The notes beneath the pieces are model-generated. The model was given only the letters and a program-made list of their open reading frames with translations, searched no databases and had not been told where the DNA came from. A stretch of 64,000 nucleotides of DNA from Octopus sinensis (Eukaryota). Where the stretch lies: contig NW_021833278.1 in the NCBI RefSeq assembly GCF_006345805.1, positions 1-64,000 of the forward strand, given 5' to 3'. Below are positions 32,730 through 50,683 of this stretch, piece after piece (positions within the stretch are counted from its first letter, which is position 1; each line of letters begins with the position of its first letter). The translations under genes and the position numbers were made by a program.

Positions 32730-33868
32730 AATAACAAAAACAATAATAATCTTCAATTCGATATCCCATTGCATATTTCGAGTCATTATATTCATTTATT
32801 CAATAAATTTGGGTTTTGTTATATATATATATATATATATATATATATATATTTGTTGTAATTTTCTTTGTAAATTGAAATTGTTTATTAGTTTGCGACT
32901 CCATCGTGTTTTTTGGAGCGTTTAGGTCCTGCTTTGATGGTCTCCATTTCCTTTCGAACGTGATCTCATCTTCAAGCAGTGAACGTCGCCCCAAAGACAT
33001 GGGGCCTCGAAGTCGTCATCTGCACGAAGGGCATCACGGCTGTCACGCAACTGTCGGTTCACTAAGTCCCTTTGGCGTGCAATCATAGACTGTGGATATA
33101 AAAAAGAAAGAAAAAAGAAACAACTTAGTAAACTGCAATGAAACACAGAGAAAGAAATTCTTACAACACAAACAACAAAACTTTCGCTGGTAAAAACAAA
33201 AGATCTGAAATAAATGGAGAAATTCGAAAGACGGTTTGTCATATTTACAGATGCAAATTTGTGTTTCATGAGCAGCTTTCAACATTTTCCATCCAAGCGT
33301 TTTTAGCCTAATATCTATACCATTGTTTGTAGCTTTATCAACTTGGAATTTTTTACCGTTAAAAAGAATTTGCTTCACATCTCTCGAAGTTTCTAAATAC
33401 TTATAAAATAAGCTTCCTGAAATGATCTCTGATAAGTACGAAGCTTCTAAAATAGATGGCGGTTTGGACTGCTTTAGTATAGCGGCAAAAACGTCTACCA
33501 CGTTTAAAGAAGATGTGGGTTCGAGTCCTATGTGAGACTAGGTAGAGCATTTATTGTAAAAAAAAGAAAGACTCTTAGAATAACGAGTGAATCATTGAGA
33601 ACAACACATTGTATATATTGGATTTAAAATTTTAAACAAGGCCAGCAATTTTGGGCGACAAGAGAGGGCGTTTACATCAACCCTGGTGATCAACGGCTAT
33701 TTATTTTATCGATCCCGGCGCTCCACTGCTACTTATTTTATCGAACCCAAATAAATGAAAGGCAAAGTCGACATCGGCGGAATTTGAACTCAGAATGTAA
33801 AGATGGACGAAATGCCGCTAAGAATTTTGTTCGACGTGCTAACGAGTCTGCTAGCTTCGGCGCTTTAG
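32730..33868. repeat. Segmental duplication block X (3' UTR, peptide exon, part of intron); paralogs at about 40095-40555 and 50312-51482
   Basis: Long co-linear matches, e.g. caattcgatatc-cattg-atatt, ggtcctgctttgatggtctccatttc, gtgagactaggtaga. Confidence 0.9.
32922..33089 (-). CDS. Peptide-precursor paralog 1, coding exon 2: SMIARQRDLVNRQLRDSRDALRADDDFEAPCLWGDVHCLKMRSRSKGNGDHQSRT*
   Basis: Acceptor ttttttctttcttttttatatccacag|TCT, phase 0; C-x6-C motif; AATAAA at 32889-32884; homologous to the exons at 40440 and 50683. Confidence 0.75.
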   Translation of the reverse strand, partial: SMIARQRDLVNRQLRDSRDALRADDDFEAPCLWGDVHCLKMRSRSKGNGDHQSRT

Positions 33869-36186
33869 CAATCCTACTCCCAATGTAGGATTCCTCACCA
33901 TCCAGGTGACAGGCACAGCCATAAGATGCATTAGGAATCTATAGCAATTGGAAGGGCGTGACCCAACTGAAATAAACATTAACACCTGTGTGACGTGAGG
34001 GCTAAGGAGAAATGAAAGTGTCACCTCTGGAGTTTGCAAATGACCACTATACTGATACGTAACTGGACAGAATAAATTTACCAACTATAAATGTCTTTGA
34101 ATAACCAGTCACTCATCTGGGAAGGCCTTGAAATCAATCTGGGGTCAATGTGTGACCCAGTGATAATAAAAAGACTTGAAAGGAGGTCTGCAATCAAATA
34201 ACTTTACTTAACACTTTGCAACTAAATCAGTGGAGGCAAAGATGCCTCTCATTTACTTGACAATTTATGCACCACATTGTAGAAATCACAATCTAAGTGT
34301 ATGTCAAAGCAAACTCTTACACTGTTGTACCATTGAATTACAAATAATGCTCATCTTCTATGCTCGGATGACCCCAGAGCTTCCAAGAATACAAATGTAT
34401 TCGTCTTTGCATAGATAAAATGACAAAATTGTGTGTTAAGTCCCCATGAGGGATCTTTTTAACTTAAGAAGATGAAATTTCATAATACTTACATCATTTG
34501 TATCTAATATCTATGGTTAAAATTTCATCAACGCAAAAGTATATGAATTGTCATGGGGGTTGTGGCCCTTATGCATAGAATATAATTTCCAAATTTCGTA
34601 AAGATCCATTCAGAACTTTTGACTTAGTTTGGATCATAAAAAAATGACTAAAATTTGGATTTAAGGCCCCCATTAGGGTGTCTTAGAATCCTCATGGAAA
34701 CTTTGTCATTTTTCTCCCCATGACACTCCCTGGACCCTAATAAGGCATGTGTAAAAATTTGAATGAAATCGGTTGTGTAGTCTCAAGTTTGTAGGGATTC
34801 ACACAGACAAACAGAAAGGACAGACAGACTACACATTCTCAGTTATATTATATATATATTAATATATATATATATATAATATATATATATATATATATAA
34901 TATATATATAATCATATAGAATATATATATATATATTAATAATATAATACATATATATATATATTATATATATATATATATATATATATATATATATATA
35001 TATATATATAATATATATATATAATAATATATATATATATATATTGGGTGAATTCCATCTCATGCACAGATTTTTTAATTAATTTTTGAAAACTAAACAT
35101 TTTGAAACTTCAGTGCATGAGATTAAAAGATCCGATATATGTATATACGTATGTCAGCATTTATGCATGGATGATATAATAATAATAATAATAATAATAA
35201 AAAAATAATAATAATATAATAATAATAATAATAATAATAATACAACAACAACAATAATAATAATAAATAATAATAATAATAATAATATAATAATAAAATA
35301 ATAATAATAATAATATACAACACAATAATAATAATAATACTATAATAATAATAATAATATAATAATAAAAATAATAATAATAATAATAATATAATAATAA
35401 TAATAATAATAATAATAATAATAATAATAATAAAAAAATAATAATAATAATAATAATAATAATAAATAATAAAAATAAAATAATAATAATAATAATAATA
35501 ATAATAATAAATAATAATAATAATAATAATAATAATATATATAAAAAAATAATAATAATATAATAATATAAAAATAATAATATAATAAAAAATAATATAA
35601 TAATAATATAATAATAATATAATATAATAATAATAATAATAATAATAAAATAAACAACAACACAATAATAATAATAATACATAATAAAATAATAAAAAAA
35701 TAATAATATAATAAAAATAAAATAACAACAATAATAATATAATAATAATACTAATATCATAATCAAAATAATAATAATAATATAATCATAATAATAATAT
35801 ATAATTAAAATATAAAAATAATAATAATAAAATAATAATAATAAATAAAATAATAATAAAAATAATATAATAATAAATAAAAATATAAAAATAATATAAA
35901 AATAATAATAATAATAATAATAATAATATGATAAAATAATAATATATAATAATATAATATATATAATATAATATAATAATAAAATAATAATAATAATAAT
36001 AATAATAATAATAAAATAATAATAATATAATAATATAATAATAATAATAATAATAATAATAATAAAATAATAATAATAATAATAATCCTAATAATAATAA
36101 TAATAATAAGAATAATACTAATAATAATAATAATCATAATAACTAATATGAATAATAATAATAATAATAAAATATTGCACAATTAC

Positions 36187-36318
36187 ATTTTTCCTTCGGA
36201 GCAGATCGATAGCCCTCTCATCGTTTATTGGCACCGTCTCTACTGGTTCAAACATCACCGCTGCTACGCTTAACAAAACCACTAGCACAATCATATTCTT
36301 GTATATTCTGTGTTCCAT
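36187..36318 (-). CDS. Peptide-precursor paralog 1, coding exon 1 (signal peptide + pro-region): MEHRIYKNMIVLVVLLSVAAVMFEPVETVPINDERAIDLLRRKN
   Basis: Start context tcaaaaaATG; basic n-region, hydrophobic h-region, VET-VP cleavage-like site; donor AAT|gtaatt, phase 0; acceptor tttacag| at 36461/36460. Confidence 0.75.
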
Positions 36319-50260: not shown

Positions 50261-50542
50261 TATAATAATAATAATATAATAATAATAATAATAATAATAA
50301 TAATAATAATAATAACAACAACAACGAAAACAATAATAATTTTCAATTCGATATCACATTGTATATTTAGAGTCATTATATTTATTTATTCAATAAATTT
50401 GGGTTTTGTTTTTTTTTATATATATATTTGTTGTAATTTTCTTTGTAAATTGAAATTGTTTATTAGTTTGTGATTCCGTCGTGTTTTTTTGGGGCGTTTA
50501 GGTCCTGCTTTGATGGTCTCCATTTCCTTTCGAATGCGATCT

Positions 50543-50683
50543 TTACTTCTTCCTCTTCACGCAGGAAATGACGTTCCAGATACATGGGTCGTTCTTCTTG
50601 TCATCTGATCCATCTGAAGGAAAGGCATCTCGGCTGTCACGCAACAGTCGGTTCATTAAGTCCCTTTTGCGTGTAATCATGAA
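50543..50683 (-). CDS. Peptide-precursor paralog 3, coding exon 2, allatostatin-C/somatostatin-like: FMITRKRDLMNRLLRDSRDAFPSDGSDDKKNDPCIWNVISCVKRKK*
   Basis: Acceptor ttttctttttcttttattcatttctacag|TTC; KK site before and KRKK after a C-x6-C 12-mer; TAA at 50545-50543; downstream AATAAA. Its exon 1 was not found in the window. Confidence 0.8.
   Translation of the reverse strand, partial: FMITRKRDLMNRLLRDSRDAFPSDGSDDKKNDPCIWNVISCVKRKK

Follow-up and report, generated by a model that had tools for sequence, protein, structure and literature searches.

The question raised by the first 64,000 nucleotides of contig NW_021833278.1 of Octopus sinensis (assembly GCF_006345805.1), referred to here as the window, is what is encoded by three paralogous two-exon units that lie in tandem on its minus strand, and which of the three may still function. 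In an earlier note on this DNA, the units were described as a cluster of three precursor genes for secreted cyclic peptides of an allatostatin C (AstC)/somatostatin-like type. In silico analysis of the window, coupled with comparison to the orthologous region of Octopus vulgaris and to known AstC precursors, points to a tandem array of divergent AstC paralogues in which paralogue 3 would be the working copy, paralogue 1 a remodelled copy and paralogue 2 a dead one, an explanation which, taken as a whole, we hold with moderate confidence.

Organization and conservation of the array

Each of the three units has its own TATA promoter and polyadenylation signal, and all exon, promoter, splice and polyadenylation coordinates of the array are given here on the minus strand of the window. 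The elements listed in the earlier note were all recovered. Exon 1 is present at 36318-36187 (paralogue 1) and 42087-41956 (paralogue 2), the homologous second exon starts in phase 0 behind a polypyrimidine acceptor at 33089, 40440 and 50683, TATA and YY1-like motifs are located upstream and AATAAA signals downstream, and the array is indeed not visible in the unspliced open reading frame (ORF) track. The coding part of exon 1 of paralogue 1 (36187..36318) comprises 44 codons, specifying a predicted signal peptide and the start of the pro-region, MEHRIYKNMIVLVVLLSVAAVMFEPVETVPINDERAIDLLRRKN, and ends at the phase-0 donor AAT/GTAATT, while that of paralogue 2 (41956..42087) reads MEHRIYKNMIVLVVLLSVAAVMFEPVETVPINDERDSDLLRWKN and ends at the donor AAT/GTAGTT. 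Both copies begin with MEHRIYKNMIVLVVLLSVAAVMF and finish in phase 0 with ...RRKN or ...RWKN. By inspection, the n-region (MEHRIYKN) is charged, the hydrophobic core (MIVLVVLLSVAAVMF) spans 15 residues, and the residues ahead of EPV are small. Upstream of both copies are found TATAAAAG and the YY1-like GCAAAATGGCG. The core promoter of paralogue 1 (36609..36660) carries GCAAAATGGCG at 36660-36650 and the TATA box CTATAAAAGA at 36618-36609, and that of paralogue 2 (42381..42434) carries the YY1-like motif at 42434-42424 and the TATA box at 42390-42381, with a conserved leader of approximately 290 nucleotides between promoter and ATG. These motifs are retained in all five exon-1 copies (two in the window and three in O. 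vulgaris), which are almost identical from about 75 nucleotides 5' of the TATA box through the leader, their homology stopping abruptly at that upstream point, at a flanking microsatellite. The leader of paralogue 2 also contains a short upstream ATG at 42290-42270 (ATGGGGAAAGTAA), the creating substitutions of which are missing from the other four exon-1 copies.

Each second exon is preceded by a TACTAAG-like branch site together with a long polypyrimidine tract and CAG, and is followed by AATAAA at 32889-32884, 40230-40225 and 50464-50459 for paralogues 1, 2 and 3, respectively, with a second signal for paralogue 1 near 32800; the spacing from stop codon to AATAAA is 30-75 nucleotides in each copy. 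The single intron of the array genes is in phase 0 after codon 44. In paralogue 1 it covers 33090..36186 (3.1 kb), with the branch-like TACTAAG at 33132-33124, the polypyrimidine tract and an element resembling a short interspersed nuclear element (SINE) at approximately 33700-33870. This intron has a GC content of 18% and contains about 1 kb of (ATT)n at 35176-36174 and 200 nucleotides of (TA)n at 34844-35044, microsatellites that account for most of its size excess over the intron of paralogue 2. The arrangement supports the view that the units are compact two-exon genes, complete from promoter to polyadenylation signal, for putative secretory prepropeptides of approximately 90-99 residues with a C-terminal C-x6-C loop.

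The window is colinear with O. vulgaris OX597825.1 at 78.35-78.42 Mb, with a nucleotide identity of 90-98% per block, the two species having separated only about 2.5 million years ago (PMC10700109). The O. vulgaris sequence carries the same three units, annotated just as hypothetical proteins. When the spliced protein of paralogue 1 was used as a query, two 'hypothetical predicted proteins' of O. vulgaris (P0001 and P0002) were retrieved and nothing else; the source genome appears to lack annotation of the array genes, as no window-encoded protein was among these matches. The spliced product has the 99 residues foreseen in the earlier note, and along its entire length it matches the two-exon P0001, which uses the same junction, with 97% identity. 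Three colinear copies are thus found in each of the two species, with no further copy in the window or in approximately 77 kb of orthologous O. vulgaris DNA, and a HMMER scan of 1.84 billion proteins with a profile of the cluster matched solely the two O. vulgaris models; for these reasons the three-copy pattern exceeds chance. That the exons might be pieces of a high-copy transposon, a possibility entertained in the earlier note, was checked and ruled out, there being only three local copies and none elsewhere in the protein collections. SINE-like and retrotransposon fragments lie in introns and spacers, outside the exons.

Coding capacity of the three copies

Paralogue 3 is, by its sequence, the only canonical copy. 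The coding part of its second exon (50543..50683) reads FMITRKRDLMNRLLRDSRDAFPSDGSDDKK-NDPCIWNVISCV-KRKK-stop, with ...DDKK directly before the peptide, and so bears out the earlier reading of a mature peptide between KK and KRKK; the predicted peptide NDPCIWNVISCV occupies 50558..50593 and its Cys-Cys ring 50584-50561. Only two copies of exon 1 are present in the window, that of paralogue 3 being absent. In O. vulgaris it lies at L002:10001, and position 64000 of the window corresponds to L002:21606, and by synteny the missing exon is therefore placed approximately 11.6 kb beyond position 64000, giving an intron of about 24 kb. In the mechanism that we propose, the signal peptide of the paralogue 3 precursor would be removed, KK and KRKK would serve as cleavage sites for prohormone convertases, and trimming of the basic residues by a carboxypeptidase would release NDPCIWNVISCV, which would close into a Cys4-Cys11 disulfide ring and act on an AstC-type G protein-coupled receptor. 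The O. vulgaris orthologue (L002:10001-34468) has a coding sequence (CDS) of 273 nucleotides and an intron of 24,195 bp, and the validated OvAstC gene is reported with a 273-nucleotide CDS and a 24,304-bp intron; this near-equality is treated as a coincidence, because the exon splits (132+141 versus 102+171) and the peptides differ.

The coding part of exon 2 of paralogue 1 (32922..33089) reads SMIARQRDLVNRQLRDSRDALRADDDFEAPCLWGDVHCLKMRSRSKGNGDHQSRT-stop, with the ring CLWGDVHC at 32999-32976. It has incurred two in-frame 9-nucleotide deletions, one of which took the ancestral stop codon, so that the protein extends 14 residues into the former 3' untranslated region (UTR), and no dibasic site is present ahead of the ring (..DDDFEAPC..). 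The peptide keeps the Pro, both Cys and the Trp, and its ring residues L-W-G-D-V-H depart from the family consensus. Paralogue 1 may therefore be envisaged as giving a secreted product with the remodelled ring CLWGDVHC and altered processing, a candidate form being ADDDFEAPCLWGDVHCL, the target of which has probably changed.

From its phase-0 acceptor, exon 2 of paralogue 2 (40324..40440) reads SMITRQGDLMNRLFLDGRDAFPSDEGKTTHVSGTSFPA-stop: compared to the exon at 50683 it has suffered a 10-nucleotide deletion which shifts the frame ahead of the peptide, so that the phase-0 reading ends in ...SDEGKTTHVSGTSFPA-stop. The peptide remnant at 40310..40366, RKNDPCIWNVISCVKRKK-stop, which includes the segment CIWNVISCVKRKK-stop, is out of frame and directly preceded by TGA. 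An identical frameshift was observed in the O. vulgaris orthologue, and the defect must therefore be real and predate the species split. Despite the frameshift the remnant differs from paralogue 3 at just 2 of 54 nucleotides. An alternative acceptor that would restore the peptide frame was sought, and there is none, owing to the TGA immediately upstream of the peptide. Paralogue 2 is likely to be a pseudogene, the 5' half of which would have been kept similar through gene conversion. Of the three precursor genes originally proposed, three units therefore stand, of which paralogue 2 is frameshifted in both species, paralogue 1 is without its processing sites and stop codon, and paralogue 3 has its first exon beyond the window.

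Relationship to allatostatin C

The protostome AstC loop is invariably six residues long, and a lone phase-0 intron interrupts the pro-region of spiralian AstC genes (PMC9048919), while the precursors of molluscs and annelids end in KR-x4-C-L-V-N-[VIL]-[VI]-[AS]-C-[YW]-basic tail-stop (PMC8514136, Supplementary Figure 1C, together with a database search). All three array copies retain two Cys with exactly six residues between them, as CIWNVISC in paralogue 3 and in the remnant of paralogue 2, and as CLWGDVHC in paralogue 1. Paralogue 3 fits the mollusc and annelid pattern in the form KK-NDP-C-I-W-N-V-I-S-C-V-KRKK-stop, with a single C-terminal peptide directly behind a dibasic site (..DDKK/NDPC..), a site that paralogue 1 lacks, the peptide of paralogue 2 being out of frame. 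Its ring residues I-W-N-V-I-S have the Asn at ring position 3 and the [VI]-[SA] before the second Cys that characterise the family ring L-V-N-V/I-V/I-S/A, and compared to the oyster ring C-L-V-N-V-I-A-C five of eight residues are identical and two conservative. The tail KRKK-stop has its counterparts in RKK-stop, KRK-stop and KKRR-stop of mollusc and annelid precursors. When the cluster proteins were jointly aligned with 12 AstC precursors from molluscs, annelids and cuttlefish, invariance was confined to the initiator Met, the Arg of the pro-region motif N-R-x-L and the two Cys; Met apart, these are the invariant columns of the AstC family alone.

Directed comparisons gave modest statistical support. 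Alignment of the cluster with the AstC family by hhalign returned a probability of 85% and E = 6e-6 over ring and tail, and pairwise BLASTP of paralogue 3 against the cuttlefish precursor P0042 gave E = 3e-4, the match being colinear from signal peptide to ring; the predicted signal peptide of the array aligns with that of P0042. The latter is a canonical coleoid AstC precursor of 90 residues obtained from RNA-seq runs, of which one of three run series was traced to Sepia esculenta. The pro-region considered by itself, excluding signal peptide and ring, reached p ~ 0.005 against shuffles, with SMIARQRDLVNRQL and ITRKRDLMNRLL aligning with SELSRERQLANRLL. A Pfam scan of the spliced array proteins yielded sub-threshold noise only, and a search with an alignment of AstC and paralogue 3 retrieved many mollusc and annelid AstC precursors and no further cephalopod members of the cluster.

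Gene structure and location were also compared. The coding exons of OvAstC are 102 and 171 bp, and the gene is on O. vulgaris chromosome 12 (10.64898/2026.02.18.706622); its phase-0 intron must therefore follow codon 34. When P0042 is broken at this codon, exon 2 would open with SELSRERQL, the S of which is aligned with the residue that opens array exon 2. This match of intron position was read through a cuttlefish protein of length equal to octopus AstC and not from octopus sequence. As OX597835.1 is chromosome 22 and the accessions are numbered serially, we infer that OX597825.1 is chromosome 12, which the array and OvAstC would thus share. The canonical AstC gene is located neither in the window nor in the approximately 77 kb of O. 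vulgaris sequence. The same preprint describes one octopus AstC, AVITACYFQAVSCY, with which the receptors OvAstCR1 and OvAstCR2, differing in potency, were deorphanised, and reports that coleoids alone have replaced the ring Asn by Gln (10.64898/2026.02.18.706622). The strings CIWNVISC, CLWGDVHC and CTWNVISC did not occur in the literature text searched. In view of the ring, the basic tail, the invariant residues, the phase and position of the intron, the shared chromosome and the modest directed statistics, we consider it likely that the array consists of divergent paralogues of the AstC neuropeptide gene. Of the original allatostatin C/somatostatin-like label, the AstC half is thereby upheld in ring, tail, invariant residues and intron, and the somatostatin half, that of the somatostatin-related SSRP-like genes, is given up on account of exon number and loop.

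Evolution of the copies

Over the stretch that runs from the promoter through exon 1, the paralogues have nine species-specific substitutions in common, as compared to three paralogue-specific substitutions common to the orthologues, all three at the 3' end of exon 1. It follows that the 5' half of each unit has been homogenised by gene conversion, and promoter and exon 1, as judged by these substitutions, evolve in concert. Between the species, exon 1 has changed at three positions, identically in both window copies; two of these changes are non-synonymous and one is synonymous. Exon 2 of paralogue 1 shows a single difference, which is non-synonymous. Exon 2 of paralogue 3 differs at 0 of 141 positions as compared to 4.6% in the adjacent intron, which at this low species divergence is modest evidence of constraint (p ~ 0.01 by a rough Poisson estimate).

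A different picture was obtained when paralogue 1 was compared to paralogue 3, the divergence amounting to 14/160 (8.8%) in the intron, 11/75 (14.7%) in the exon-2 pro-region, 18/48 (37.5%) in the peptide codons and 6/87 (6.9%) in the 3' UTR. The peptide codons thus differ from intron and UTR combined (18/48 versus 20/247) with a Fisher p = 1e-6, and have non-synonymous (pN) and synonymous (pS) divergences of 0.40 and 0.11, respectively, while pN/pS in the pro-region is about 1. The comparison shows, at the level of sequence, a burst of amino acid-changing substitutions in paralogue 1 relative to paralogue 3 that is confined to the codons of the mature peptide. Because neutral decay cannot exceed the rate of the intron, this suggests that the mature peptide of paralogue 1 was remodelled adaptively or, possibly, that it was altered by patch conversion from an unseen donor.

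Alternative explanations and significance

Several observations weigh against an array of AstC paralogues with a working member. The profile of the cluster drew no protein other than the two O. vulgaris models from the HMMER scan, and a hidden Markov model (HMM) of the AstC family, applied to the six-frame ORFs of the window, ranked the array peptide first with E = 0.07; the AstC relationship is not significant at database scale. All 16 aligned family members, like the precursors of PMC8514136, carry Y, W or F directly behind the second Cys, a place taken by V in paralogue 3 and by L in paralogue 1, and published surveys credit O. vulgaris, like molluscs in general, with one AstC precursor. 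To these are added the indirect route by which the intron positions were matched, the limited weight of the identity of paralogue 3 between the species, and the nature of the O. vulgaris gene models. The annotation of that genome draws on transcripts from Iso-Seq and RNA-seq as well as on ab initio prediction (PMC10700109), and the models of the array genes may be partly ab initio, while P0002 (161 residues) splices from inside a Cys codon of paralogue 3 to a ZBED5/FAM200-like fragment and on to the paralogue 2 exon. The corresponding stretch of the window, 43744-43885 (-), resembles a domesticated transposase of the ZBED5/FAM200 type, and its frame, coding in P0002, is broken; P0002 was accordingly rejected as a conserved gene and is at best an aberrant read-through transcript.

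Taken to its end, this line of argument would make the array evolutionary debris, that is, local AstC-like duplicates which are all silent or decaying, with O. vulgaris annotations that are ab initio or read-through artefacts. Such a view would accommodate the frameshift of paralogue 2 in both species, the loss of dibasic site and stop codon in paralogue 1, the 2:1 ratio of non-synonymous to synonymous species changes in exon 1, the pro-region pN/pS of about 1, the chimeric and non-conserved P0002, and the lack of any transcript-derived family protein in the collections searched. Neutral decay, however, cannot give a divergence of 37% in peptide codons beside 8% in the adjacent intron and UTR; moreover, paralogue 1 keeps both Cys, the Trp and the Pro, paralogue 3 has an exon 2 identical between species beside an intron that differs by 4.6%, and promoter, splice sites and polyadenylation signals are intact in every copy. 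The lack of transcript-derived matches was rejected as evidence against expression, as the one traced series of the three AstC-carrying RNA-seq series is from S. esculenta rather than an octopus, and no octopus AstC was retrieved there either. Debris is considered unlikely.

A convergent origin was also weighed, in which the units would form an unrelated, octopus-specific orphan secretory family with a merely AstC-like C-x6-C loop. The failure of the profile search of 1.84 billion proteins to find relatives, the E = 0.07 of the AstC HMM on the window, the absence of Pfam matches and the missing post-ring aromatic residue would all be in keeping with this, but convergence would have to yield jointly the ring residues N-V-I-S, a basic tail followed by a stop codon, the invariant pro-region Arg, a phase-0 intron at the aligned position, a 90-residue precursor and a place on the AstC chromosome, and we regard it as most improbable. 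Conserved flanks, a hypervariable mature peptide and tandem copies are typical of venom and defence peptide families. The array shares with them a conserved predicted signal peptide, UTRs and intron around a mature peptide in which the Cys frame is fixed and the rest hypervariable (pN 0.40 versus pS 0.11), as well as tandem duplication and concerted evolution, such that an AstC-derived family might have been recruited, instead of serving as an internal hormone, to an exocrine or external role, for instance in the salivary gland or in venom, in skin or defence, or as a pheromone. Recruitment of neuropeptides as toxins is documented in molluscs, the consomatins of cone snails having arisen from a neuroendocrine SSRP-like gene (PMC9048919), and this precedent speaks for such a role. 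On the other hand, there are only three copies, one of them dead, and the peptide of paralogue 3, which does not differ between the two species, closely resembles the usual molluscan AstC, as would suit an endogenous ligand; an exocrine role appears very unlikely.

The array proteins have been known so far only as unnamed hypothetical proteins of O. vulgaris. If the preferred reading, a tandem array of divergent AstC paralogues, is true, the additional AstC-type genes would revise the picture, drawn in recent surveys, of a single precursor in molluscs, O. vulgaris included, that serves one or two receptors, and each of the two deorphanised octopus receptors, which differ in potency, could have a second ligand among the array peptides. 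The array would also be a compact case of neuropeptide-gene birth, diversification and death within 20 kb. A stronger version, distinctly unlikely in our estimation, is that of a second AstC-type octopus locus on the AstC chromosome which keeps the ring Asn and basic tail lost by coleoid AstC and diversifies under positive selection in the manner of venom, defence or pheromone peptides. This would be a cephalopod counterpart of the cone-snail recruitment of a neuropeptide as a toxin, and expression outside the nervous system would open a way to secreted peptides by which a venomous cephalopod mimics hormones.

Other features of the window

The GC content of the window ranges from 18 to 44%, and long microsatellites as well as SINE-like and retrotransposon fragments are present, a make-up typical of cephalopod genomes; neither an Rfam nor a tRNA scan gave a match in the window. 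The SINE-like element of approximately 150 nucleotides at 33700-33870 recurs at more than 20 other sites on both strands (e.g. 12968-13121, 29476-30248 and 53717-55720), and the AstC mRNA of cuttlefish carries a related piece in its 5' UTR (L005:114-170). Within a stretch rich in this element, at 53699-54561, a 186-nucleotide unit is repeated in tandem (4.7 copies, 93% matches). Fragments of retrotransposon ORFs with weak Pfam matches to reverse transcriptase (RT) or zf-RVT-like domains lie in the spacers between the peptide units at 48578-48853 (+), 49432-49929 (+) and 31791-32468 (+). About 3 kb of trinucleotide-type low complexity at 5629-8681, with a GC skew of -0.4, gives rise to long spurious His/Pro/Ser/Met-rich ORFs on both strands. 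A 304-residue ORF of ordinary composition at 4581-5495 (-) has no Pfam match and may belong to a nearby gene as one of its exons or be what is left of a transposon, and the C-terminal part of an ORF at 18628-19074 (-) (...WPPNSPDCNPLDYCVWGE...) is Tc1/mariner transposase-like by eye, with no Pfam match at E <= 0.01.

Comparison with known systems

The closest system for comparison is coleoid AstC, represented by OvAstC (OctVul6B022881P1, AVITACYFQAVSCY) and the cuttlefish precursor P0042. In common with these, the array specifies a 90-residue prepropeptide with a predicted N-terminal signal peptide, encoded by two coding exons with a phase-0 intron just before the motif S-x-x-x-R-x-R-x-L-x-N-R-x-L, and a single C-x6-C peptide at the extreme C-terminus; a probable location on O. 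vulgaris chromosome 12 is a further point of likeness. The array differs in its ring, IWNVIS or LWGDVH as compared to the coleoid YFQAVS, such that paralogue 3 retains the Asn where coleoid AstC has Gln. Behind the peptide of paralogue 3 stands KRKK, a basic tail that the coleoid precursor, ending at Tyr, lacks; the residue after the ring is V or L instead of aromatic, the cleavage site is KK instead of KR, and the exon split is 132+141 instead of 102+171 nucleotides. Unlike coleoid AstC, the array is multicopy, with one copy broken. The AST-C-like precursors of other molluscs and annelids, which end in ...KRSHIQCLVNVIACYRKK in oyster, ...KRNHVQCMVNVVSCYRKK in Nautilus and ...KRQPVQCLVNIVSCWKRK in Platynereis, share with the array the ring C-[LMI]-x-N-[VLI]-[VI]-[AS]-C, a dibasic site three to four residues ahead of the first Cys, a basic tail that leads directly to the stop codon, and a single phase-0 intron. 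In contrast to these precursors, the array carries Trp as the second ring residue, lacks the aromatic residue behind the ring and has a shorter pro-region without the KKRQLEIKKR/coiled segment, and it escapes HMMER detection at database scale.

Several AstC-type genes per genome, with adjacent paralogues, are also encountered in arthropods as AstC, AstCC and AstCCC (PMC8786951). The array resembles them in having several such genes side by side in one genome; however, the arthropod duplication is ancient and every paralogue is conserved, whereas the array copies are young, have 5' ends that evolve in concert and include one pseudogene. Protostome SSRP-like genes have three exons, with phase 0 and phase 1 introns, and a four-residue C.WK.C loop that extends across two exons (PMC9048919). 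SSRP-like genes, consomatins and, as predicted, the array encode secreted precursors with a disulfide loop at the C-terminus and a phase-0 intron within the pro-region, and with the consomatins the array further shares a hypervariable mature peptide between conserved flanks, while it is set apart from the SSRP-like genes by its two exons, its one phase-0 intron and a six-residue loop without W-K that lies wholly in the last exon.

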